This document shows, in pieces, positions 10,500-64,000 of a DNA stretch of 64,000 bases. Below the pieces are notes generated by a model. The model had not been told where the DNA came from. It saw only the letters and a program-made list of their open reading frames with translations, and ran no database searches. Made by a program: the position numbers and the translations under genes. Source of the stretch: Tubulanus polymorphus (taxonomy: Eukaryota; Animalia; Nemertea); assembly GCF_964204645.1 (NCBI RefSeq), contig NC_134036.1, positions 1,860,001 through 1,924,000 of the forward strand, in the 5' to 3' direction. Position 1 is the first letter of the stretch. Each line of letters starts with the position of its first letter.

Positions 10500-13259
10500 A
10501 TGGACATCAATCGAACATTCGTAAGTATCTGACGAAACCAATCTCTCGAATTTACGTTTTGTTATGATTCTAGATTTATATTATTTTTGAAAAAAGTGGG
10601 CGTGACAAAAAAGATCCAAAATTTGAGAAAATACGGAGTACCACCATGCATCGACATAATACAACATTCAAATATTATAATACTCTATTGAGAATTCGGA
10701 ACGTCGTGTATATTTTCTAAAATGTTTATTTCATACAATGTTGTTGTTGTTGTTTTGTAGCCTTTGCCTCATACGGAGGAAATCAAATGTCTTCACGAAA
10801 GTAAAGGTTTGATGGTTTTCATCGAAGGCGAAGTACCGGAACACACAACCGACGGGTAAGCATTGCTCGATGGCAGAAATTTGTCATCAGCTAATCCTCT
10901 TCTATACTACCAGTGGTTTTTGACATTTTTCTAAACTCGATATTTTAAACTCAAAAACCAAAAGCTTTCAATCAAAAACAATTTCATATTTTTTTCTTTT
11001 TATGTAAAAATGCTGATGAGCATATTTTATAAACAATGATATTGATAAAGATCTTTTTAACACAATTTCTTTTAAATCAAAACTGAAAAACCAAATTTGT
11101 TATGTTTTGTTTTTCTGTGTAAAGTCAACTAGCACATTTTATATAGATTATAGGTTTGTTGAATAATGAAGAAGATTATGATTATTTTGTTTGTATTTTT
11201 GATAGTTTTTCGTTCAACTTCATGGCCGGTCCGACGTGCGACGGTTCGGCTAGAATACATTTCCACATGACGACCCGTAACGGAGAAGTGATCCGTAATA
11301 CCCACGAGCCCGGAAGTGGTTGGATGACCGAAGAGAACGAGGGGGAAATGCCGTTTCATCCCGGACAGAAATTCAACTTGCTCATCAAACTCAAACAAGC
11401 TATGATTAAGGTATAAGAGTTGATTTCGTCGCCATAGCGGCCATTTTGAACTTTAAAAAATGATTCTGCATCTTGTCAAAGCGGCGTTGATCTTGATTGA
11501 TGACATAATAGCCTTCACTGGTTCATAACAGATTTAGAAGCCATTGAGCACCAGTCTAATCGATTTATAGTCGCTTTGCGGCCATTTTGAACTTACGAAA
11601 AAAATCAACACCGCTGATTCTACATATTGTCCAACGAATTATGGCAGAATAGCATTCGCTGGTTCAAGGAAGTTTTGGTTACATTTTGAATTCAGTCGAT
11701 GTGGTCGCCATTGCGGCCATTTTTACTGTAATTTTATATATATCATCATCATTTATTCAATTAGGTTTTCGTCAACGGAAGTGTGTTTTGTCAGTACGAA
11801 CACAAATTGCCCATGGATGAGATCGACCATTTCCACATGTACGGCGACTACCACATTACCAATATCTACCAGGCTATGACTGGAAAGGTGCATCCGGTAA
11901 GTCTCGAGTCGTTGATCTTAGAATATGGAGGGTCGTTCCTCTTATTTATTTGATAGGATAGGTTTTATTTGATTTGTATCGGTTACAAACCCACCACACC
12001 TACCGGGAACGAATTTTGGGATTTGACTTTGAAATCGGAAATCGAAATACAAATAGGGGCTGTCGGTTATGTCAGAGTTAGTTGTGGCTCAGGCCTAAAT
12101 ACATTTGAGTTCATTTCATTAATCTTCAAATTTCTGCGAGGTTTAGTGCAATTTGCATAAATGAATAATTTATTCATTCATATTTGAATAATTAATCAAT
12201 TATCTATTGTAGTCGATCCCGCTGAGGAAGGACATCGCCCATTGCATGCATCGTCCGCACTTGGATTTCTGGATTCGAGGAACTCCGCGCGACGATTGCA
12301 AACGGTTCAACATCAACCTGAAAAACCAGGACGAAGTCTGGGTTTTCCACTGCGACGCGAGGGTTGACGTGGATGAATATCAGAATATAATGTTGGCGAA
12401 CACGTGCGACAAGGGCGGACACTGGCACGATGAGATTCGACCGGGAGATTTCCCGTTCGCACCCGGGCGACGTTTCGACCTTTATTTAGCTGCCGATCAA
12501 GAAGGAGGATATGAGGTATGGTTCTTTTAATTTCAAACTGGGGTAAAAGTTGAGGTGACAATCATCGAACATTCGATATAGCCTACTGATCGTCCACACT
12601 TCACATGTGTTCAGTGCTTCACCTGAGACATTTATAATTGGAAATGAACTACAAACACCAGATATTAGACATTTTATCAGCACACTTTCAAAAACTGATC
12701 GTCCACACTTCACATGTGTTCACTGCTTCACCTGAGACATTTCTAATTGAAAATGAACTACAAACACCAGATATTAGACATTTTATCAGCACACTTTCAA
12801 AAACTGATCGTCCACACTTCACATGTGTTCACTGCTTCACCTGAGACATTTCTAATTGAAAATGAACTACAAACACCAGATATTAGACATTTTATCAGCA
12901 CACTTTCAAAAACTGATCGTCCACACTTCACATGTGTTCACTGCTTCACCTGAGACATTTCTAATTGAAAATGAACTACAAACACCAGATATTAGACATT
13001 TTATCAGCACAATTTCAAAAACTGATCGTCCTTGCTTTGATGACCTTGTTCCATGCGGTAGATTATTGAAGACACCCTGTAGCCATTGTTATTGAAAACT
13101 ACGTACATTTTAATCATATATATTGTGTGTTCTGTCTATTTTCAGGTTTACGTAAATGGAGTCCACATCATGAACTACCCAAATCGTATACCGTTACCGA
13201 CTGTTGATAACCTCACTATCGAAGGAGACGTCGAAATTGAACACTATTTCATCCAATAA
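10500..13259 (+). CDS. Tandem-repeat (two-CRD) galectin, about 289 aa
   Basis: Exons 10500-10520, 10761-10855, 11206-11410, 11765-11896, 12213-12515, 13146-13259 (870 nt, phases compatible). CRD1: FSFNF..HFHMTTR..VIRNT..GWMTEE..MPFHPGQKF..KVFVNG..YEHKLP..GD. CRD2: RFNINL..FHCDAR..ANT..WHDEIR..FPFAPGRRF..VYVNG..YPNRIP..LTIEGDV. No signal peptide. Confidence 0.9.
12585..13031. repeat. 109-bp minisatellite x4 in galectin intron 5
   Basis: ACTGATCGTCCACACTTCACATGTG...CACCAGATATTAGACATTTTATCAGCACACTTTCAAA, near-identical copies. The reverse-complement array is at 47970-48270. Confidence 0.95.
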
Positions 13260-48270: not shown

Positions 48271-51056
48271 CTGTGAAAAATCATTAAATACCTTATGATT
48301 GGTCATCTGAAAGGAAAACCTTCTGCGGCAAGCGGGTATTTGAGTAAACCAAAAATTAAATCAAATCTGGACATTGTGTTAATGATATTATATACATATA
48401 TTGTGATATGTTGTTGTTGTTGCTGTTGTCGAAATTAGGAAAATACAATATTATAGGATTCGAATTTAGAAAAAAAGAAAGATGAAATAAAGAAATGAAT
48501 TAAATGCATAATTTGCTGATTGATGAACAGTATTCTGAATATATAAATATATATGAATTCACTAATAGAAAAGGATAAAACAGGATTAGATTTTTAAGCA
48601 TTAATTATTTAAATTACATAGAATTACCATAAAGATTGATAAATATATATATGCTATATATTTGTTAGCTTTAAACCTTGGAGGGTCCAGTTTCAGAGGT
48701 TTACCGAGAATGAGAACGTCGAGATTAGTAATTAATTGTAATTTTATTGAATCGTTGAAGTTATTGAGAATTAGTAGGTCAATTAATCATAATTTAGTTT
48801 TGTGAAACTGGCCCTGATTATTGTGGTTTTGAGAAATTAATATTTAGATGTTGTTTCGTTCCTAATTTTGCCGATTTTGGTTTGAAAAATTGTAGATATT
48901 TCTAAAAAGTTGTGTAGATACTTAAAATAATTTGTAGATAATGTATTTAAAAAGTACGATGACGTCATGACCCTTATTGTTGTAATTATGATTTAATTAA
49001 CGGATTATCGGCTCATTAGTGTAAAATAATTAATTAATGTATTAACCAGTTAATTATCATAATTTATGTAGAGCATTTTGCGAGAAAAATATAACTTTCT
49101 CCCTTCGGAGAATTTTTGCGGTTCGGGAAATTCCGTACATCGTTCTCGGCTGCGGCCGGATAATTCCGTATATGCTCGTGACAGTGTTCGGAAAAATCCG
49201 AACAGCGTGCGCGCGGGTGTCCGGAAAATCTCGAACGTCGTTCGGTAGCGTTCGGGAAATCCCGAAGACGCATACGGCGCTGTTCGGTGGCTTAACGATT
49301 GTTACAACGGAAAAGGCCGAAGTGCTCCGGAAGACCCGAAGAGTCCCGAAGTCGATGACGTTATGACGGTCACTTGCCAGAGACGGTGTCTGGATGCGTT
49401 CCGGGGCGCGTGTACAAAACGATTGAGGGAATTTGTATCGTCAAAATCATAACTTCTCTTCTCCATTACGATAAACTAAACTGATACGTTTCTTCTAATT
49501 TCTGCTGAGTTTAAAAGTTGACCCGGCCGCCTGTCTAACCTGTACATTACTTTCTAGAACAAATCATGACCAAGCTAAGACAATAACAGACCCGGCAGTT
49601 ATTAGTTTAACTTATAGAAATGAACTGATTTCAAATTTTAATGCAGTTTCCAAAAGTGACCCAGTCCGATTTGGAGAAACAAGTTATCTGATTTTGTTCT
49701 AGACCCAAACACTTATTGTTCTAGTATTATGCAAAATTATGTGCCCAAAAATGATCGATGTTTTATATTAGTTTCACTTTATTTGTGTAGAATGCGCGAC
49801 TCGCAAAGTTTTTATGCGACTTGAAAATTTGAAAAAAAAGTAATACGAATTCCCGATATAGATTATTACAAACTGAAATATAATATACAATGCATAGCAA
49901 CAAAATAACCGTTCGTATTGTTTCTCTATTTCTTCATGTTTTTTTGGGGGGTTTTTACTCGCGTTCGATCAGAATTTGAAGACAAATTTTCCTTCTTAAA
50001 AATGTTTCAATGAGACAACCAGAAGATTGGGCTCTGTACGGCAAAGCCCTCGAAGATTTCTGAAGTCGAATGTTTTGGACCATTTTCTATCATACATGTA
50101 CCCGCCATGCCATACCGGTAATTATTCACAAAATCCCTGATACAAATACATTGAAGATCCGATTATTTAAAAGGGCTGGACAAACTGTAGGCTGTATGGC
50201 GATAAAATATCTTCATAGTCGGAGAGGTCAGTATTTTTGTAAGGATGGCCAGATCTTTTGTTCCGAAAGTAGGTTGACAGGTTGGCATTATTTATTACAT
50301 GTTTTCAAGGATAATATATAGATATCTATTGCCGCTCACTGGTTCGTTCAGCCTCTCTAAATCCCTCTCTTTCTGGTAGAGTCTTATATTACCTGCTAAT
50401 GTATCGTAAGAAGATTTAGAGGTGTCTATCGTCGTTAACGGTGGACCAGGATACGTTTAAGTAGGTGTGAGGCGTCTATCCATGAGACTCCTTTCCCTGT
50501 AGCTGTTCTGGGATGATGAGGTCTCAGTAGAACACGTGTCTGACAGACAGCTGGGAGGAGTTTGCCATTGTTTCATGCGCCAAAATACATTGTATCTTAA
50601 TGTGGATTATCATGGATTACCGCAGTGGATTATCGAGGATTATCACAGCGGATTATCACAGTTTCTAGATGGATTAGCAGATTTGTAAAGTAAGTTGTTT
50701 TTATGATATTCTCATTTAACACACTTTTCGCTGTGGTCAGTCCATCATCCTCACGCCAGGTGGCGTTTAAATAACGTGTACATTTTTCCTCTCCGGCGGC
50801 AGCGCAGTAACGAAATTAGAACGATTAGAAAATGTTTTTTTGTTTGTTTTTGATAAAAAGATGAATCTTTATTTAGCTAAAAATCGTACATTCTAATTAA
50901 TAAATATTTAGTCAAATTAATTGACATATTCAAATTAAACTTATTTAAATATCGAACTTACAAAAAATGCGAAACAATCTACGCGGTGATACGCGAGTAC
51001 TTCTCGACTTTTCCCAACGCCCGTTTCTTCTTTTCTGCTGATCTTAGTTTCCCAGA

Positions 51057-51116
51057 GCCCTTATCAGTTCTCCGTCCAGTGATTTCAGTTGCAAACCGGA
51101 CGAACAAGTGAAAAGG
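51057..51116 (-). ncRNA. mir-184: pre-miR-184 copy 1
   Basis: Reverse complement of 51057-51078 is UGGACGGAGAACUGAUAAGGGC, the invertebrate mature miR-184-3p sequence as I recall it. The 5p arm CCUUUUCACUUGUUCGUCCGGU (51095-51116) pairs to form a 60-nt hairpin. Confidence 0.95.
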
Positions 51117-51986
51117 AGACAGGGTCACGTGATTTCTCTCAGGGGGTCGGTCGGGCAGGGGGCGCGCGCATCACTACTGACCAGACGGGCCGTGGCCACA
51201 ACCGGTTTTAGACAGTAACTCCACCACTGATCAGAAGAGACCCGACTTATACACGGAATTCTTTTCTGACCGTTTTTTTTTTAACTTCCTGGAAATTATT
51301 TGAAAACCCGATACGTGGTATTTGTGAACAATAGCTGCGCGGCGTCCGGGTTTTTTACTCTAAACCGAATCAAGTTGTCTGGGACGCTTTTAGAACTGTA
51401 CTTTGTTGTATCGGACAAATACGAATTATTTGTTCTCCAATATTGATAACAATAGCTAATATTAATTCAAATAGTTCGTTGAATATTGACTCAAAGTTCA
51501 AATAAAAAATATTGACTTAATTCATCATAAAATCAAATGATTTTTGTCGCCACGTCAAACACTGTTAAGAACTATGCACATATTTTTTTCCGTCTGCACG
51601 TGCTGCCACCTAGCGTCGCCAACCGTCAGCGCCACCTAGCGCCTATTCAATGTACCATCGGAATGCATTTTTGAGTAGTAATAAAAATTTAAGTTAAAAA
51701 GGCTTAAGTTAAAAAGTCAAGTAGATAAGCTTCCGGCAAGCACCCTAATTCGACAATCAGGATTAGGATCTGCCAACCTCGAGCGAGCTAGCAGCGTCGA
51801 GCAATTTACCACAGCGCCAAGCCGCGGTGATCAGAATACGAATATTTATTCACACTCCAACCATTTCCATATATGGAGGAAAAACAGTATTTACAATAAT
51901 TACATAAACGGTAATAAAAGCTACAAGACAGTTCTCCGTCCGGTGGCGCCGCCTAGCGCCGATTCAAGTAGATTAGCTTCCCACAA

Positions 51987-52046
51987 GCCCTTATCAGTTC
52001 TCCGTCCAGTGGGTTCACAATTAAACCGGGCAGCGAAGTGATAAGG
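51987..52046 (-). ncRNA. mir-184: pre-miR-184 copy 2
   Basis: Mature UGGACGGAGAACUGAUAAGGGC at 51987-52008 (reverse complement). The 5p arm CCUUAUCACUUCGCUGCCCGGU (52025-52046) has the conserved CCUUAUCA start. 60-nt hairpin. Confidence 0.96.
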
Positions 52047-52499
52047 AGACGAGGGATTTTACTCTGCAATTAAAATATTCAGTATACAACAAAACAATTA
52101 AAACCCAGAAATCGCTGAAAATGTGTAGTACATTTCACACCGACAGATGGCACTGCTCCCCCAAAGAATCTTCTAAAATATCTAGAGTTTGGATTCTATA
52201 ATTCGAAAAAAGATGGTTAGACCTAGAAAGAGAGAGAGAGAAAGTGGGAGTGACTCAGGGAGAGGAGAGAGAGGGGGAGAGGTAGAGAGAGAGAGAGAGG
52301 GGGGAGATAGAGGGGGAGAGACTCAGATAGGAAAGATTGTGCCGGAAGGGAGCAGACTCACTCGTGTATATTCTAAAGAGAAAATGGTGCGGCAGGAAAT
52401 AGAGGAGCGTGGGTGGAGAAGATGAGGTAGGCCTACCCGGTAGGTGAATAGCAGTACTCTAATAAAAGGGGTTTACTTGACTCGAGGGCAGTAGCGGTT

Positions 52500-57700: not shown

Positions 57701-59775
57701 CTGAACCTAGTTCCACAATTGTGTGAGTTTAATTTGACTGTGCACCCAGTTCAACAGTTGTGTTGGTTTAATTTGTCTCTGGATCCAGTTCCACAGTTGT
57801 GTGAGTTCACTATTTCTACAGGACTTTGAGGTCTAAAACTTTGGGTCCAATTCCACGAACAGATTACTTTCTGGAAATCTTAAAAAACGGGCAGGTCCAA
57901 TCATTGTATTCGTAACAGGGGGTTGTGTTATCGACTCACTAGAATAGTTAAACGTCGATTCAGTTCTGTGCTTTCCAGATATGAACTTGAAACTAAAATC
58001 TTATTGATATTGATATAAATATAAATATAAGGATTAATATTATATAGTCACTTGAATACAATATAATATGAACTGTTATCCGAAAGGAAACACTTGAGAT
58101 AAAGTTCCGGTTTGTACCTATCACCTCAATATATGTATAACCATGAACTTACTTATCACTTATCACTTAGGCCTATCATTAATTGCAATGTGATCGTATT
58201 GAAGTTTATCAGTTAAATTGGGTTTTATATCATTTCGTGGTGGTTGATACTATTATTCCTTGGCCGGATCTATAAACAAATAGGTCGATGTTGAATTAAT
58301 GTATATGAAATCCACTAGACCTGATCGTCTTTTGAGCGAAAGTCATTTTAATTTCTAATAACGGACTCAGCTCTTTTAGGTCGACGATCATTATGTTGAG
58401 GACTTATCCGAAATGACGACTTACACTTAACAATTGGGTTTGAAAATAGATATTGGGACTAAAAAAATAATTGATGACCTCAGTAATGCGATGACTTATG
58501 CTACATAATATGACTTATTTTTTTTATAAATTTGCAATTTGGACTAAAATAGAGAGAGACGTCGTCAGTAATGTAACGACTTTATCAAATATATATAATG
58601 ACTTTATCTATTTTTCATTGTTTTTGAATTATTAGATTCTTATATCGGGCCTAGTGTGTGTTTTCTGCGAATATTATCGTTTAGCTATATTCTTCTAAAT
58701 GGTTGATTTTACGTCTGATAAATTTCGAAATTTTGTACCATATGGCATCGCTGGGCTTTTATGTAACAATTGTAGTTTATGGAAAACGATAGTTTTTTGA
58801 ATGACAATAGTTTTATTTTCGTTTCGTAAATGATAAATTAAGTCTGAAAAAAAGTATCAAAAATCGAGACGTATTCATAGTTCGAAGAATTATTACCATG
58901 AAAATAGCGAAAACGACAAAGCGTCAAGATGATGCGAAAATTCTTTTGATGAATTGTTCAAAGGATTTTTATAGTCGATTTCGAAGGAATATTTATGTAT
59001 TGTATTGTATAAACGTATGCACATATATTTTCCAGTGTAAGTAATTTCAAAATGATAACAAAAATCCCAGAAAATATTTATTCAGATTCGTGCACATAAT
59101 TTTTCATCATAGAATCATAAATTATCTTTCCAAATGACGTAAAAATCCCCGAAAAATAGATTCAGATTCGTGCATTTAAATGTTTCATCATTGAAACATA
59201 TAAATTATTTTTCCAAATTACGAAAAAAAACTTGAAAAATATATTCAAAGTCGTGCGCACAATTTTTAATCATAAAAACATATAAATTATTTTTTAAAAT
59301 GGCAAAAAAACAGAAAAAAAACAGGTTTTTTACGTCGATTTTGAAATATGAATAGCTAATATAAACGTTTGTGTCGTTTTTTTCAAATATCAAAGTAATG
59401 AACATTTTCGACGTCTGTTTTCGATACGAATAGGCATGAACGTGGCAATAATATTTCATCTTGCAAAATCCCAGCGAATTGCGATTTGAATATTTTAATA
59501 TTATCAACATTTTTAAATGGTTTATATTTATCATTTTCAACACCGATTCGTCACGAAGAGTTGCCTTAGATGATTTACGAAATATGGCAGTTGATTTGAG
59601 TTTTGAATATTTTAAACCGCAATGGAACAGCTGCTTGACGGTTCTTTCTATTTGAATATTACATTAACTGAATATCTATTATATATGAGGTTCTATATAT
59701 AGTAATATACTCGCTTATTTTACACAGTATGATTTTCCATAAATTTCCAAAAATATGCATTTAAAAAAGAAGCTG

Positions 59776-59913
59776 GGGCCGGTTGCATAGTCATGGCTTA
59801 GACTTAAGACCAGTCTAAGACCAACTTAGTTCTATAGCTAATCTAAGAACTTAAGACCAGTCTTAAGATTTAAGACCACTTTTGGACTGAAGTCACGACT
59901 GTGCAACTGGCCC
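59776..59913. mobile_element. Family B MITE, CTG TSD
   Basis: CTG|GGGCCGGTTGCATAGTC...GACTGTGCAACTGGCCC|CTG. Confidence 0.85.
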
Positions 59914-61009
59914 CTGATTTGAACAAGTTTTCCATACTCTATCTATTCGTTGTCTTTACTTATTTCTAGTTGATACTTCAACTTGTATGCTACACAAATC
60001 CTCGTAATATTAAGCTAAAAAATTAACGCCTTGTTTTTCATTTCTGGTGAGTTTAAGTTGACCCGGCCAACCGCCTATTTATCATGGTCATTACTTTTTT
60101 CACGATCAAGCTAACAATAACAGACCCGGCGGTAATAGAAATGAACTGATTATAACTTTTATTGTATTTTACAAAATTGACCCGGCCGATTAGGAGAAAC
60201 AAGGTATCATTTTATTTTAGCCTAATGAAATTGATGCAGTGATAGTGACTCTTAGAAAAAGTTGATCTTTCTAGAAAATATAACGCCCCCTCAAACTGGT
60301 CTAGTGATTTAGACACTTACGACTGCTTTTACAAATCACCCTATGACATCATTGAATTGTTGTGGTTATTAAGATACCTCCAGAAATAAATCATAAAACT
60401 ATGGCATCATCTGAAGAGGCTTCCTTGTGATTTTAAATCAAATCTAATAACTCTGGTGTATAATGTATGAACGGGGGATTAACGAGGGATTAATGGCGGG
60501 CGAGGGAGGATGAAAGTGACTAATTTGATAATAAATCTAGGCTTAATCGTCAAGGTGATGTGTATATATGTATACATGTACAATATAAACACACCTGGAG
60601 TAATAATTACTCTCGCGATCATCGCGCGACTCAATCAATCCTGATTGCGACGCCGTAGGTGCGATGCTTAACGACAATAAAGGCATAGCGATTACACCTG
60701 CGAGAAAGACTACTCTCGGATTACATATTATACCCGGTGTATTGTTTTAATCTATAGAGTCGGTGTAGAGTATCTCTGAGCTCTGTCGGTTCGATATTAG
60801 TACGATACGGGGGGGATGAGTGGAGACAGGTTGTTAATAGCGGTGATGTGTGTTTGTTGTATATTGCTAGGTTACGCGCGACCCCGCCCTTGTTTCGTGT
60901 ACCACGAGACGCAGTTTGAGGTCTAGTAGTAACTCACGTGTTCTTATAGAATGCGTTCTAAACCGACTTCATGAGTCGATCATTTACCAATAGATCCGAA
61001 GTTAGTTAA

Positions 61010-61370
61010 ATGTGTTAATAAAAAGTATGAATCGAAAAATTAAATGTAGCCGCAAAGCAGCGATATATTGGTGAGTTCCAGTAACAACTGAAATACGAGA
61101 TCAACTGTCTTAAATTCAGTCGCCTATTAGGCTATAACAAATGAATGGAAATTTGTGGTGTAGAAAAATATATGGAAAATTAAATACAGCCGCAAAGCAG
61201 TGATCTTGAATCGAAAATTAAATATAGCCGCAAAGCAGCAATCTAGGTGATTTCAAGTAACTCATGTAAAATACGACCTTGATTGACTTTAATTCAGTCG
61301 CTTGTGGTAATGTGGTAGTTAAAAGCATAAATCGAAAACTAAATATAGCCGCAAAGCAGCGATAATGGAA
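61010..61370. repeat. Degenerate tandem repeat
   Basis: AAAA(T/C)TAAAT(A/G)(T/C)AGCCGCAAAGCAG x4. Confidence 0.8.
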
Positions 61371-61450
61371 TTTCGGTTCATTAGATATCAATGATAGTTT
61401 CCTGAAAATCAAAAACTTATTGCAGACCCTGAAAAAAATGTTCTCAGTTT

Positions 61451-61596
61451 TGGACGGGAGAACTGATAAAGACACGCATACATACACGCACACATGCACA
61501 CACCACGCAACACAATATTCCACCAGGGCTGAGGCCAGCCCTGGCAATCGAGTATATATATTTCAGTACCTTTTGGACGGTAGAACTGATAAAGAC
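61451..61596 (-). other. Two near-perfect miR-184 complementary sites
   Basis: Minus strand GUCUUUAUCAGUUCU(C/A)CCGUCCA at 61451-61473 and 61574-61596 pairs with all 22 nt of miR-184, with one bulged target base and two G:U pairs. Confidence 0.75.
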
Positions 61597-61766
61597 AGCA
61601 CATTCAAAACTACACTCACCTAAAACACTCACTTCCCAGGGTCAGGCTTCACAAATTTGATTATTTTTGAATCTTCAAAAAATAATTCTTAGCGAAAAAT
61701 TGCGTTTCTTCAAAGAAATTGTAACAATGATAAAAAGTCTTGTTGTGAAGCCGGACTAGGACACTG

Positions 61767-61807
61767 CATTCATTCATTCATTCATTCATTCATTCATTCA
61801 TTCATTC
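61767..61807. repeat. (CATT)n microsatellite
   Basis: Read directly. Confidence 0.95.
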
Positions 61808-62124
61808 AAACACTCAAATAACAAATAATTCTTGTACGAAACATTTTCAAAGCATCGAAAAATATCGATTGTACTTTCGTGTTAGACACTATGGCAATAA
61901 TTCAACAATTAAAACCGATCGATTTCAAATAATTTCAAATGTATTGACATTTAACGACCTTTCGTCGATGATATTAAAACGTGTTTAAATAGTCGAGTTG
62001 TACATATTGCATAGGGATGTTTCATAAAAACATCTGTTAGAGGTTCTGTCATCGACCATGAGCCGGCTGAGCAAAATACGGTTAAACTATATATTTCAAG
62101 TATGGGGGTACGTGTACAGAGGCC

Positions 62125-62346
62125 TCAAGTCGGATCTTTTGATTCAAGAGTGATATATGTGAGTTGGATGGTACAGTAGACTCCGCTCAAGTCGGGTCTT
62201 TTGACTTGACAGTGACATCTGAGTAGGATGATACAGTAGACTCCGCTCAAGTCGGATCTTTTGACTTGAGAGTGATATCTGAGTTGGATGATACAGTTGA
62301 CTCCGCTTAAGTCGGATCTTTTGACTCGAGTGTGATATCTGAGTTG
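62125..62346. repeat. 60-bp minisatellite x3.7
   Basis: CTCAAGTCGGATCTTTTGACTTGAGAGTGATATCTGAGTTGGATGATACAGTAGACTCCG units. Confidence 0.95.
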
Positions 62347-64000
62347 AGTTCGACGAACCCTATCTACACTAGTCAATTAACTTATTCCAACTCAAAAAGT
62401 ATTTCAACGACTTTCAAACATAAAATCTGCCGCATCGACTCGATCGCATCGTATCAAAATATTCGTTGAATAATATTTAAGCCCCTGCTTTATTATTTGA
62501 CCCAACAAAACTGGTAAACCGTAAATATTTATGTGTTTGTCTAACTCTGCGGGTTGAAGAAACTCCACTTGAGAATTTTTTTCGATCAAGTGGCAGAAAG
62601 TCTGCGCATATTGTAAACAAACAGTAACACGTAAACCGTATTCGTGGCGCTCGATAAAAATGGACCCAATAACACAAAGCATTGTACGATAGATTCTGTT
62701 GACTTCTAAAGTTTAAACTATCTTCGAAAAACTAGATAACCGTTATTGTGAGTCTGAAAATATTCTTTTTCAGTAACCAATTATAGTTTAATTGATAACA
62801 TCTAACCAGATATCAGAAGAAAATAAAAAGTAGAAAAAATAGTTATTTTATCCTTTTTCAATAATGATTGATGCTTGAATTTAGATACCAATTAACTTCG
62901 ATTAGATTTTGATTTTTTTTTATGATAGTCGGCCATCAAAGAGAATAAAAAGTTAGTTTTTCCTGTTCTTCGATCAAAGCTTTTTCTTATAAAATCTAAT
63001 TCATTTTGAATATTGAAAAAAGAATTTTGTATCGATCTAGGCCGCTCACCTTTTGTCACTCGGCGAAATGAACTATTCACTAAAGTCCTAAGTTCCTGAT
63101 ACGCAACAAACGTAGCGGTTGTACTCAACAATACACATCACCGCGCAACACATCACCACGAGTGACCCTTTACTCAATGACGTGTTGGTATAAAGTCAGT
63201 CGCTTGATGTTCAGTGCGCGAGGCAAGGTGCGCGTCATAGCGCGACAGTAGCAGGTGCGCGCAGCGCGGTTTAATTCAAAACTCTAAACAAACACAGACG
63301 GCGCGCGCGATACGCGAAAGGTTGTGTGGGCTTTTCAAAACGTGATAATTCAAACATGACCTTGTCCCCAAAACCCACAACAATACCCACAAGATGTTTT
63401 TTTCGTTTCTATTTAGATACATCAAAGATATGAGGTTAGAAAAAGATTATTCAGGGTTGTATTTAGTACCAAACTTCCTCCTATTTTTCCCAAGGTAAAA
63501 TTTTCACAACCTGGCAATAGAAATATAGATTAACATTCGCGAATCGTTGGTGCCGCTTTAGAAGCCCAGAATTTATTAAATTATCGAACTTCTAATATAT
63601 ACACATGTTCAACATGCAAGTAGATATGGAAACCCCTCACCACCCCACCCCCGTTGAGAATTCCTGACACCTCCCTGTCGAGCTAAGCTGAGATTTAAAA
63701 CATTTTCCCACGCACCTAGTTATAGAACGCGCACTTCAGTATTTTCTAATCACCAGAAACAGCTTTTCTTTGTTCTGAATCCCAGATTAAATAAATATCA
63801 ACTTGTCTCCCGAGATGACGAAAGAAAGCCTTAAAAAAATTCGAATTAAGTGTCGCCAGGGGAACGGATTTGGTAGGCGATGACGGTGGGAGGTATTGTT
63901 GGTATCCCGACACCTGTCTCCTTTTCAGGACGAAGTTTTATTTCCAATAATAGGAGATTTATTTTAAAGCTTATGTTACACAGTAATCACGTCGTCATCC

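Follow-up and report, generated by a model that had tools for sequence, protein, structure and literature searches.

Three near-full-length bulged miR-184 pairing sites upstream of the mir-184 genes of the nemertean Tubulanus polymorphus: a candidate feedback of a microRNA on its own locus

Why should sequences able to pair with an entire mature microRNA lie beside the genes that encode it, on the same strand as those genes? This question is raised by a window of 64,000 nucleotides in the genome of the nemertean Tubulanus polymorphus (the whole stretch of DNA analyzed; G000:C12:1860001-1924000), in which a preliminary description had noticed a pair of miR-184-like motifs. The motif TGGACGG[G/T]AGAACTGATAAAGAC has exactly two matches in the window, both on the plus strand and 123 bp apart, as that description had it. 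No third match to this 23-mer occurs in the window, even with three mismatches allowed, and 0 of 100 dinucleotide shuffles of the window gave a match. In the genome searched (268 Mb, 77 contigs), a third site is located outside the window, 11.85 kb past site 2 and in the same orientation as sites 1 and 2. The motifs noticed earlier are genuine, exceed by far in statistical terms what chance would give, and make a stronger case than the preliminary description suggested. The sequences of the three elements are established as follows.

61451-61473, plus strand: site 1, with the extra base G on the plus strand; the putative acting reading is the minus strand, GUCUUUAUCAGUUCUCCCGUCCA.
61574-61596, plus strand: site 2, with the extra base T on the plus strand (A in a minus-strand RNA) and the core as in site 1.
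Window-equivalent 73447-73469, plus strand (G000:C12:1933447-1933469; L003:1501-1523): site 3, TGGACGGGAGAACTGATAAAGTT.

The uniqueness of these elements is likewise established. Across the 268 Mb, the pattern GGACGG-N0-2-AGAACTGATAA has five matches, namely, the three sites on the plus strand and two mir-184 hairpins on the minus strand, and all five fall within 22 kb, while the reversed-pattern control returned 0 matches in the same 268 Mb. Ungapped 22-mer matches with up to three mismatches are found genome-wide in the miRNA genes only. The read depth over 61445-61628, taken from public DNA contigs on 58501-64000, is 32, which is the single-copy level, and neighboring bins climb to 10^4-10^5. 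A dispersed repeat or transposon has many genome copies; because the sites have three copies in 268 Mb and lie at single-copy depth, they do not belong to a common repeat; such membership was among the conditions by which, in the preliminary description, the idea would be refuted.

The surroundings are those of a repeat-rich, gene-poor region. The segment from 45 to 104 kb is without a long open reading frame (ORF) or coding exon and resembles a gene desert, upstream of which lies a plus-strand myosin V gene. Adjoining site 1, positions 61006-61363 hold 3 to 4 copies of a 140- to 160-bp repeat (block AATCGAAAA.TAAATATAGCCGCAAAGCAGCGAT), whose family is moderately repeated genome-wide, as judged by a bin depth of ∼1000. 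The stretches 59605-60340 and 61997-62364 are high-copy repeats, given their depth of 10^4-10^5, and the latter is a 60-bp tandem array (62124-62346). A 109-bp satellite forms 11.3 units at window-equivalent 70863-72096 (L009:6863-8096) and is also found in the window at ∼12668-13031 on the minus strand. Its consensus holds a split, weak miR-184 match (TGGACGA, 17 nt, and then CTGATAAAA), and one unit carries the full seed match TGGACGG at window-equivalent 71591. This unit was rejected as a fourth site and regarded as a coincidence; the copies of the satellite number in the hundreds and are spread over many contigs, on either strand.

The mir-184 genes to which the sites are linked are two minus-strand hairpins.

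51977-52058, minus strand: mir-184 hairpin 1, Rfam score 67.2 bits, with the mature sequence UGGACGGAGAACUGAUAAGGGC at 51987-52008.
51047-51128, minus strand: mir-184 hairpin 2, Rfam score 53.4 bits, with an identical mature arm at 51057-51078.

Hairpin 2 scores just under the cut-off of the Rfam mir-184 family (RF00657, 54.1 bits) and folds as a hairpin at -29.8 kcal/mol. The sense miR-184 sequence of the sites lies on the strand opposite the mir-184 genes, and on the gene strand the sites are reverse complements of the mature miRNA. Read in minus-strand orientation, sites 1, 2, and 3 are 9.4, 9.5, and 21.4 kb upstream of hairpin 1, respectively, and all three share one orientation relative to the hairpins. 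Linkage and orientation are established by these positions, and the earlier placement of the sites on the miRNA strand about 9.4 kb upstream proved correct, with the nearer hairpin 9.4 kb off. The genome contains no other sites of this kind, which lie on the hairpin strand of the miRNA's own locus and complement its mature form.

Pairing with miR-184 is far stronger at these sites than elsewhere in the region. Compared with mature miR-184, sites 1 and 2 carry one extra base after nt 7 and G-to-A changes at nt 19 and 21. In RNAduplex predictions, the minus-strand reading of both sites pairs with all 22 miRNA nucleotides, including two G:U wobbles at nt 19 and 21, so that the claim of full-length pairing holds for each window site at -34.7 kcal/mol. 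In a scan of 75 kb on both strands, with a background of -8.1 ± 3.4 kcal/mol, the duplex energies of sites 1, 2, and 3 are -34.7, -34.7, and -32.3 kcal/mol, and the next best value is -24 kcal/mol. Seed pairing comprises nt 2 to 7, with nt 1 facing an A. Beyond a 1-nt target bulge, pairing resumes at nt 8 and is uninterrupted up to nt 22 in sites 1 and 2 and up to nt 20 in site 3. The extra A of site 2 fixes the bulge between miRNA nt 7 and 8. In sites 1 and 3 the position is ambiguous because the extra base is a third C facing GG; the bulge can be placed at 5|6, 6|7, or 7|8, and RNAduplex puts it at 5|6. The single extra base and the substitutions at nt 19 and 21 thus stand as first reported, as does the bulge after nt 7 in site 2, but in site 1 the bulge may lie anywhere from 5|6 to 7|8. 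Nucleation-bulge (pivot) sites of animal miRNAs, including bulged miR-124 sites, were reportedly described by Chi, Hannon, and Darnell in 2012. The extra C of sites 1 and 3 resembles them in its complementarity to nt 6 and in a possible position between nt 5 and 6. However, nucleation-bulge sites pair in the seed region only, whereas the whole miRNA pairs at the miR-184 sites, and the bulged base of site 2, unlike that geometry, cannot pair with nt 6.

The strength of the duplex could also be read as intramolecular. A single long minus-strand transcript would then contain both the sites and the hairpins, the sites would pair with the hairpin 3p arms, and the 22-bp duplex would compete with hairpin folding or provide a double-stranded RNA substrate. 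A site is as complementary to a 3p arm as to the miRNA, and their duplex (-34.7 kcal/mol) is indeed more stable than a whole hairpin (approximately -30 kcal/mol), but a local hairpin folds cotranscriptionally, well before a partner 9 to 21 kb away could reach it, and a likeness that ends at the ends of the mature miRNA fits the processed miRNA rather than its precursor. Such masking is the least probable of the alternatives that we weigh here.

What varies among the copies and what is kept is informative about the partner of the sites. Core identity is 22/23 between sites 1 and 2, 21/23 between sites 1 and 3, and 20/23 between sites 2 and 3. Sites 1 and 2 differ at the extra base alone, the position that would be left unpaired against miR-184, and site 3 departs from site 1 only at the bases facing miRNA nt 21 and 22. 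By comparison, the 90-nt flanks on each side of the three copies are 0.61 to 0.78 identical, versus 0.63 to 0.66 (± 0.05) for shuffles, and the divergence noted earlier for the flanks of the two window sites is borne out by an alignment at the level of shuffled sequence. Sites 1 and 3 are exceptional in sharing ∼25 nt directly upstream, and the flanks in general are CA-rich in composition. The likeness to the miRNA genes extends from mature nt 1 as far as nt 20 to 22, and the loop, star arm, and basal stem are therefore not copied. Within nt 1 to 20, all changes relative to miR-184 are G to A on the plus strand, as is the change at nt 21 in sites 1 and 2, and these changes stay paired (as G:U) only with the minus strand as RNA. 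By our own estimate, a random substitution would preserve pairing in this way in ∼0.2 to 0.3 of cases. Each of these points is modest alone; jointly, they are as predicted by selection for pairing with the processed miRNA and would be unlike a decaying duplicate. This constraint pattern is established for all three copies and, as far as sequence can tell, is what pairing to mature miR-184 predicts.

All three copies carry the extra base and the G-to-A change at nt 19 and hence descend from one ancestor, and tandem and dispersed repeats abound in the region. These features would suit an old inverted partial duplication of the 3p arm, copied twice more and functionless. Decay, however, would not spare 21 to 23 nt amid flanks randomized to the level of shuffles, nor would the changes then be found at the bulge and the two final miRNA positions alone, and we therefore regard such neutral relics as improbable. 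Because the conservation pattern is not neutral, the sites need an explanation even if they are untranscribed.

A further candidate source of constraint is the plus strand. A 60-codon ATG ORF at 61438-61620 (plus strand) contains the peptide LDGRTDKD twice, 41 codons apart, in frame with sites 1 and 2, and the difference between the two sites is synonymous in it (GGG/GGT). This frame, shared by the window sites, counts against reading the elements as RNA targets and would be expected if their function were at the level of the plus strand or the DNA and apart from miR-184 pairing, either as a LDGRTDKD micro-ORF or as a protein-binding motif in a mir-184 enhancer. A single difference would nevertheless hit a third codon position by chance in 1 of 3 cases, and site 3 has no ATG and a TGA in frame immediately upstream, which makes the peptide unlikely. 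In addition, neither a peptide nor a motif explains the match to 22 of 22 nt of an ancient miRNA, the boundaries at the miRNA ends, or the position adjoining that miRNA's own genes. A function of this kind appears very improbable. The neutral relics, the micro-ORF, and the intramolecular masking are all less likely than a reading of the elements as sites for Argonaute-miR-184.

Could the elements instead be small RNA genes in their own right? No mir-184 covariance-model match was found at 61.4 to 61.6 kb on either strand at an E value of ≤1. The sequence around sites 1 and 3 folds no better than its shuffles do (z scores of 0.75 and 0.42); over the folds around the window sites, z scores span 0.75 to -2.65, and the stable part belongs to an unrelated hairpin at 61523-61544. 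The ∼22-bp stem of a mir-184 precursor, whose 3p arm holds the mature sequence, is not formed by the sites. The Rfam search and the fold z scores thus agree with the preliminary description that neither site lies in a pre-miRNA-like hairpin. Two local features are relevant to the folding of the sites.

61523-61544, no strand assigned: perfect 9-bp stem with a 4-nt loop, CCAGGGCTG AGGC CAGCCCTGG, between sites 1 and 2.
61426-61450, minus strand: flank common to sites 1 and 3, reading ACC(C)TG.AAAAAATG(G)TTCTC on the plus strand.

The first is the sole strong local structure near the window sites. Within the second, GTTCTC (61440-61445) pairs with GAGAAC inside the site, which gives a 6-bp stem with the seed match CCGUCCA in its loop. 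A small stem with the seed match in the loop is present in the minimum free energy fold of the minus-strand RNA in all three copies, formed by GUUCUC/GAGAAC in sites 1 and 3 and by UACC/GGUA, from a different flank sequence, in site 2. The predicted probability that the seed match is fully unpaired is 0.34, 0.02, and 0.16 for sites 1, 2, and 3, respectively, compared with a background median of 0.006. With three sequences only, this exposure of the seed match in a loop is suggestive at most. The same stem also weighs against our preferred explanation, in that it must open for nt 8 to 13 to pair.

That explanation, to which we give a probability of roughly 0.45, is that the elements are selectively kept miR-184 sites in a minus-strand RNA and exert feedback on miR-184. 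The interpretation offered in the preliminary description is accordingly plausible and has support in part. The broader proposition, that the three elements function as miR-184-pairing RNA sites of any kind, gains a slight balance in its favor from their sequence. We infer transcription of the minus strand, Argonaute binding, and its outcome in the following way. The RNA carrying the sites would be a long primary miR-184 transcript or a neighboring noncoding RNA. Argonaute loaded with miR-184 would bind through seed nt 2 to 7 (with the A opposite nt 1), continue over the 1-nt bulge, and then pair along nt 8 to 20 or 22. Because the sites come from the miRNA's own locus, binding would feed back on miR-184 output, and the likeliest outcome would be negative feedback, through a high-affinity decoy or through target-directed destabilization of the miRNA, as full 3′ pairing would draw the miRNA 3′ end out of its pocket. 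Taken by itself, this decoy or decay branch is possible but doubtful. In a further tentative formulation, pri-miR-184 or a long noncoding RNA from the same promoter may be a cis-encoded governor with three near-full-length bulged self-sites. Each round of transcription would yield sites that capture Argonaute-miR-184, with the miRNA destroyed in a manner akin to target-directed miRNA degradation (TDMD) or the sites sliced, and the output of the locus would be buffered without a trans-acting trigger gene.

Slicing feedback is nearly as likely as the decoy or decay outcome, a close second, and on its own remains unlikely. Argonaute-miR-184 would cut the sites in the 5′ part of pri-miR-184 opposite nt 10 and 11, and the capped 5′ end would be detached and the hairpin-bearing RNA exposed to 5′-3′ decay. 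The sites pair across nt 9 to 12, including the scissile nt 10 and 11, as part of continuous pairing over nt 8 to 20 or 22, and variation among the copies is confined to nt 19 to 22 and the bulge, the positions least needed for slicing. A bulge opposite the miRNA 5′ region is compatible with cleavage in a plant system. At the Arabidopsis miR398-BCBP site, which has a 6-nt target bulge, AGO1 cleaves between nt 10 and 11, and removal of the bulge only raises the efficiency (PMC4005643). As in this example, the miR-184 sites are almost perfectly complementary to an ancient miRNA, keep the central pairing, and place a target bulge against the 5′ part of the miRNA; they differ in that miR398-BCBP is a plant case with a 6-nt bulge in an mRNA 5′ untranslated region, acts in trans, and has demonstrated cleavage, whereas the miR-184 sites are predicted (PMC4005643). 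Loss of the bulge would favor slicing, yet 3 of 3 copies keep it, and slicing would presume a miRNA Argonaute in T. polymorphus that is slicing competent and tolerant of a seed-proximal bulge. Because all copies keep the bulge and its base is free to change, we lean slightly to a decoy or decay outcome with impaired slicing.

The comparison with TDMD is mixed. An ideal TDMD trigger has an 8mer or 7mer-m8 seed and a central bulge of >2 and <5 nt (PMC6081425). Like the Serpine1/miR-30b/c, NREP/miR-29b, and Cyrano/miR-7 pairs (PMC6081425), the miR-184 sites combine a seed match with extensive 3′ pairing (nt 13 to 22 in sites 1 and 2 and nt 13 to 20 in site 3), are few in number, and lie in a noncoding context. 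Those triggers act in trans, and their pairing is broken in the center by a bulge or mismatch. In contrast, the miR-184 sites are linked in cis and pair continuously over nt 8 to 22, with no bulge or mismatch around nt 9 to 12, and their only bulge is of 1 nt at or inside the seed edge. The seed is a 7mer-A1 or bulged rather than a contiguous 8mer or 7mer-m8. Of the TDMD-like pairing initially proposed, the extensive 3′ pairing is therefore retained, while the center lacks a bulge and the seed is interrupted. Since the sites are without a central bulge and a contiguous 8mer or 7mer-m8 seed, we do not file them as canonical TDMD, and both departures from the characterized triggers also count against our preferred explanation.

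A precedent for pairing at a miRNA's own locus is let-7. As summarized in a review (PMC4172024), mature let-7 and ALG-1 of Caenorhabditis elegans bind a complementary site in the let-7 primary transcript and promote its processing (Zisoulis et al. 2012), and miR-709 blocks the maturation of pri-miR-15a/16-1. The T. polymorphus locus is similar in that the miRNA is complementary to a site of its own locus on the hairpin strand, and an autoregulatory loop through Argonaute is proposed here. As far as the account in the review goes, let-7 has a single nearby site, a demonstrated primary transcript, and a shown effect, whereas three sites at 9 to 21 kb upstream, complementary to the miRNA almost throughout, are known here from sequence. 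Nuclear targeting of the let-7 kind, in which Argonaute-miR-184 on nascent minus-strand RNA promotes or blocks Drosha processing or transcription, would draw on these let-7 and miR-709 precedents and on the position of the sites in cis with the hairpins and in the same orientation. The sites are nevertheless 9 to 21 kb from the hairpins, far beyond the distance in let-7, and a nuclear Argonaute and a continuous transcript would have to be presumed. We consider this chromatin or loop targeting quite improbable.

A self-limiting gene of a deeply conserved miRNA, with three self-complementary sites, would be a new circuit design and at the same time a variant of known modules of miRNA autoregulation and decay. 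To our knowledge, endogenous miRNA-decay triggers and near-perfect animal targets act in trans, and we know of no well-studied self-site other than that of C. elegans pri-let-7. No publication connecting miR-184 with TDMD or with self-sites emerged from our literature search. The locus would also be a natural test of how a seed-edge bulge with otherwise full pairing acts on an animal Argonaute, whether through slicing, guide decay, or sequestration.

Two public sequencing runs, the only ones found to contain this DNA, behave on 58501-64000 as genomic DNA, with flat depths of ∼33 and ∼20, and no splice-like joints were found at the sites in these runs. Both runs cover the sites, and their resemblance to genomic DNA stands against our preferred explanation. 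GC and AT skew and CpG content gave no signal of a transcribed strand. With respect to conservation, the last exon of myosin V as a query retrieved a best ORF match of 73% identity, and no mir-184 was found within 10 kb 3′ of myosin V in two distant animals. A metagenome scan for TGGACGGNAGAACTGATAA returned 12 contigs, representing ∼10 independent loci of which nine look microbial, and this count is about the chance expectation for 18 fixed bases by a rough estimate. An animal contig present in three metagenome samples (L012, L019, and L021; L021:1443-1466, minus strand) contains TGGACGGGAGAACTGATAAAAAAC, which shares the extra G. Its neighbors are a tRNA-type SINE and an EGF-like exon, and the contig is not close to the T. 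polymorphus genome. Upstream of TGGACGGGAGAACTGATAAAAAAC, UUCUUCCGUC can form a weak 10-bp stem with it. No mir-184 match was found on this contig, and an exact-protein look-up from it gave no match; TGGACGGGAGAACTGATAAAAAAC could be either a chance match or a distant counterpart.

The specificity of the sites is evident from a second group of mir-184 genes in the same genome.

G000:C7:15050823-15052837 (L031:2823-4837), plus strand: seven-hairpin mir-184 paralogue cluster, 39 to 54 bits, all just under the Rfam cut-off.

In this cluster, an ancient miRNA that is otherwise single copy has expanded. The mature arms of the paralogues depart from canonical miR-184 mainly at nt 9 to 12 (e.g., UGGACGGAAAACUGAUAAGGGC), and one starts with AGGACGG. 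Against five paralogue sequences, the sites score -23 to -28 kcal/mol, clearly worse than against canonical miR-184, and no comparable same-strand sites were found within ±40 kb of the cluster. At the mir-210 locus (G000:C11:6146982-6147081, minus strand; L050:1120-1151 and 1501-1600), no near-perfect self-complementary site was found within 1.5 kb. Since both the paralogue cluster and mir-210 are without them, linked self-sites are not a general habit of this genome, and the pairing module, judged by predicted duplexes, is specific to the canonical miR-184 locus. The lack of comparable linked sites at these two loci also counts against our preferred explanation.

Two further sense copies of mature miRNA sequence were observed. 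A partial copy of miR-184 nt 2 to 14 (GGACGGAGAACTG) is located at 51929-51941 on the minus strand, 36 nt 3′ of hairpin 1, and is adjoined by the GC palindrome GGCGCTAGGCGGCGCC. This copy may be left over from the hairpin duplication or may serve as an element of the pri-miRNA. At mir-210, the strongest complementarity is a second sense miRNA copy rather than a target site, and this apparent copy of the mature sequence, ∼390 nt downstream of the Rfam hairpin, suggests a tandem pair.
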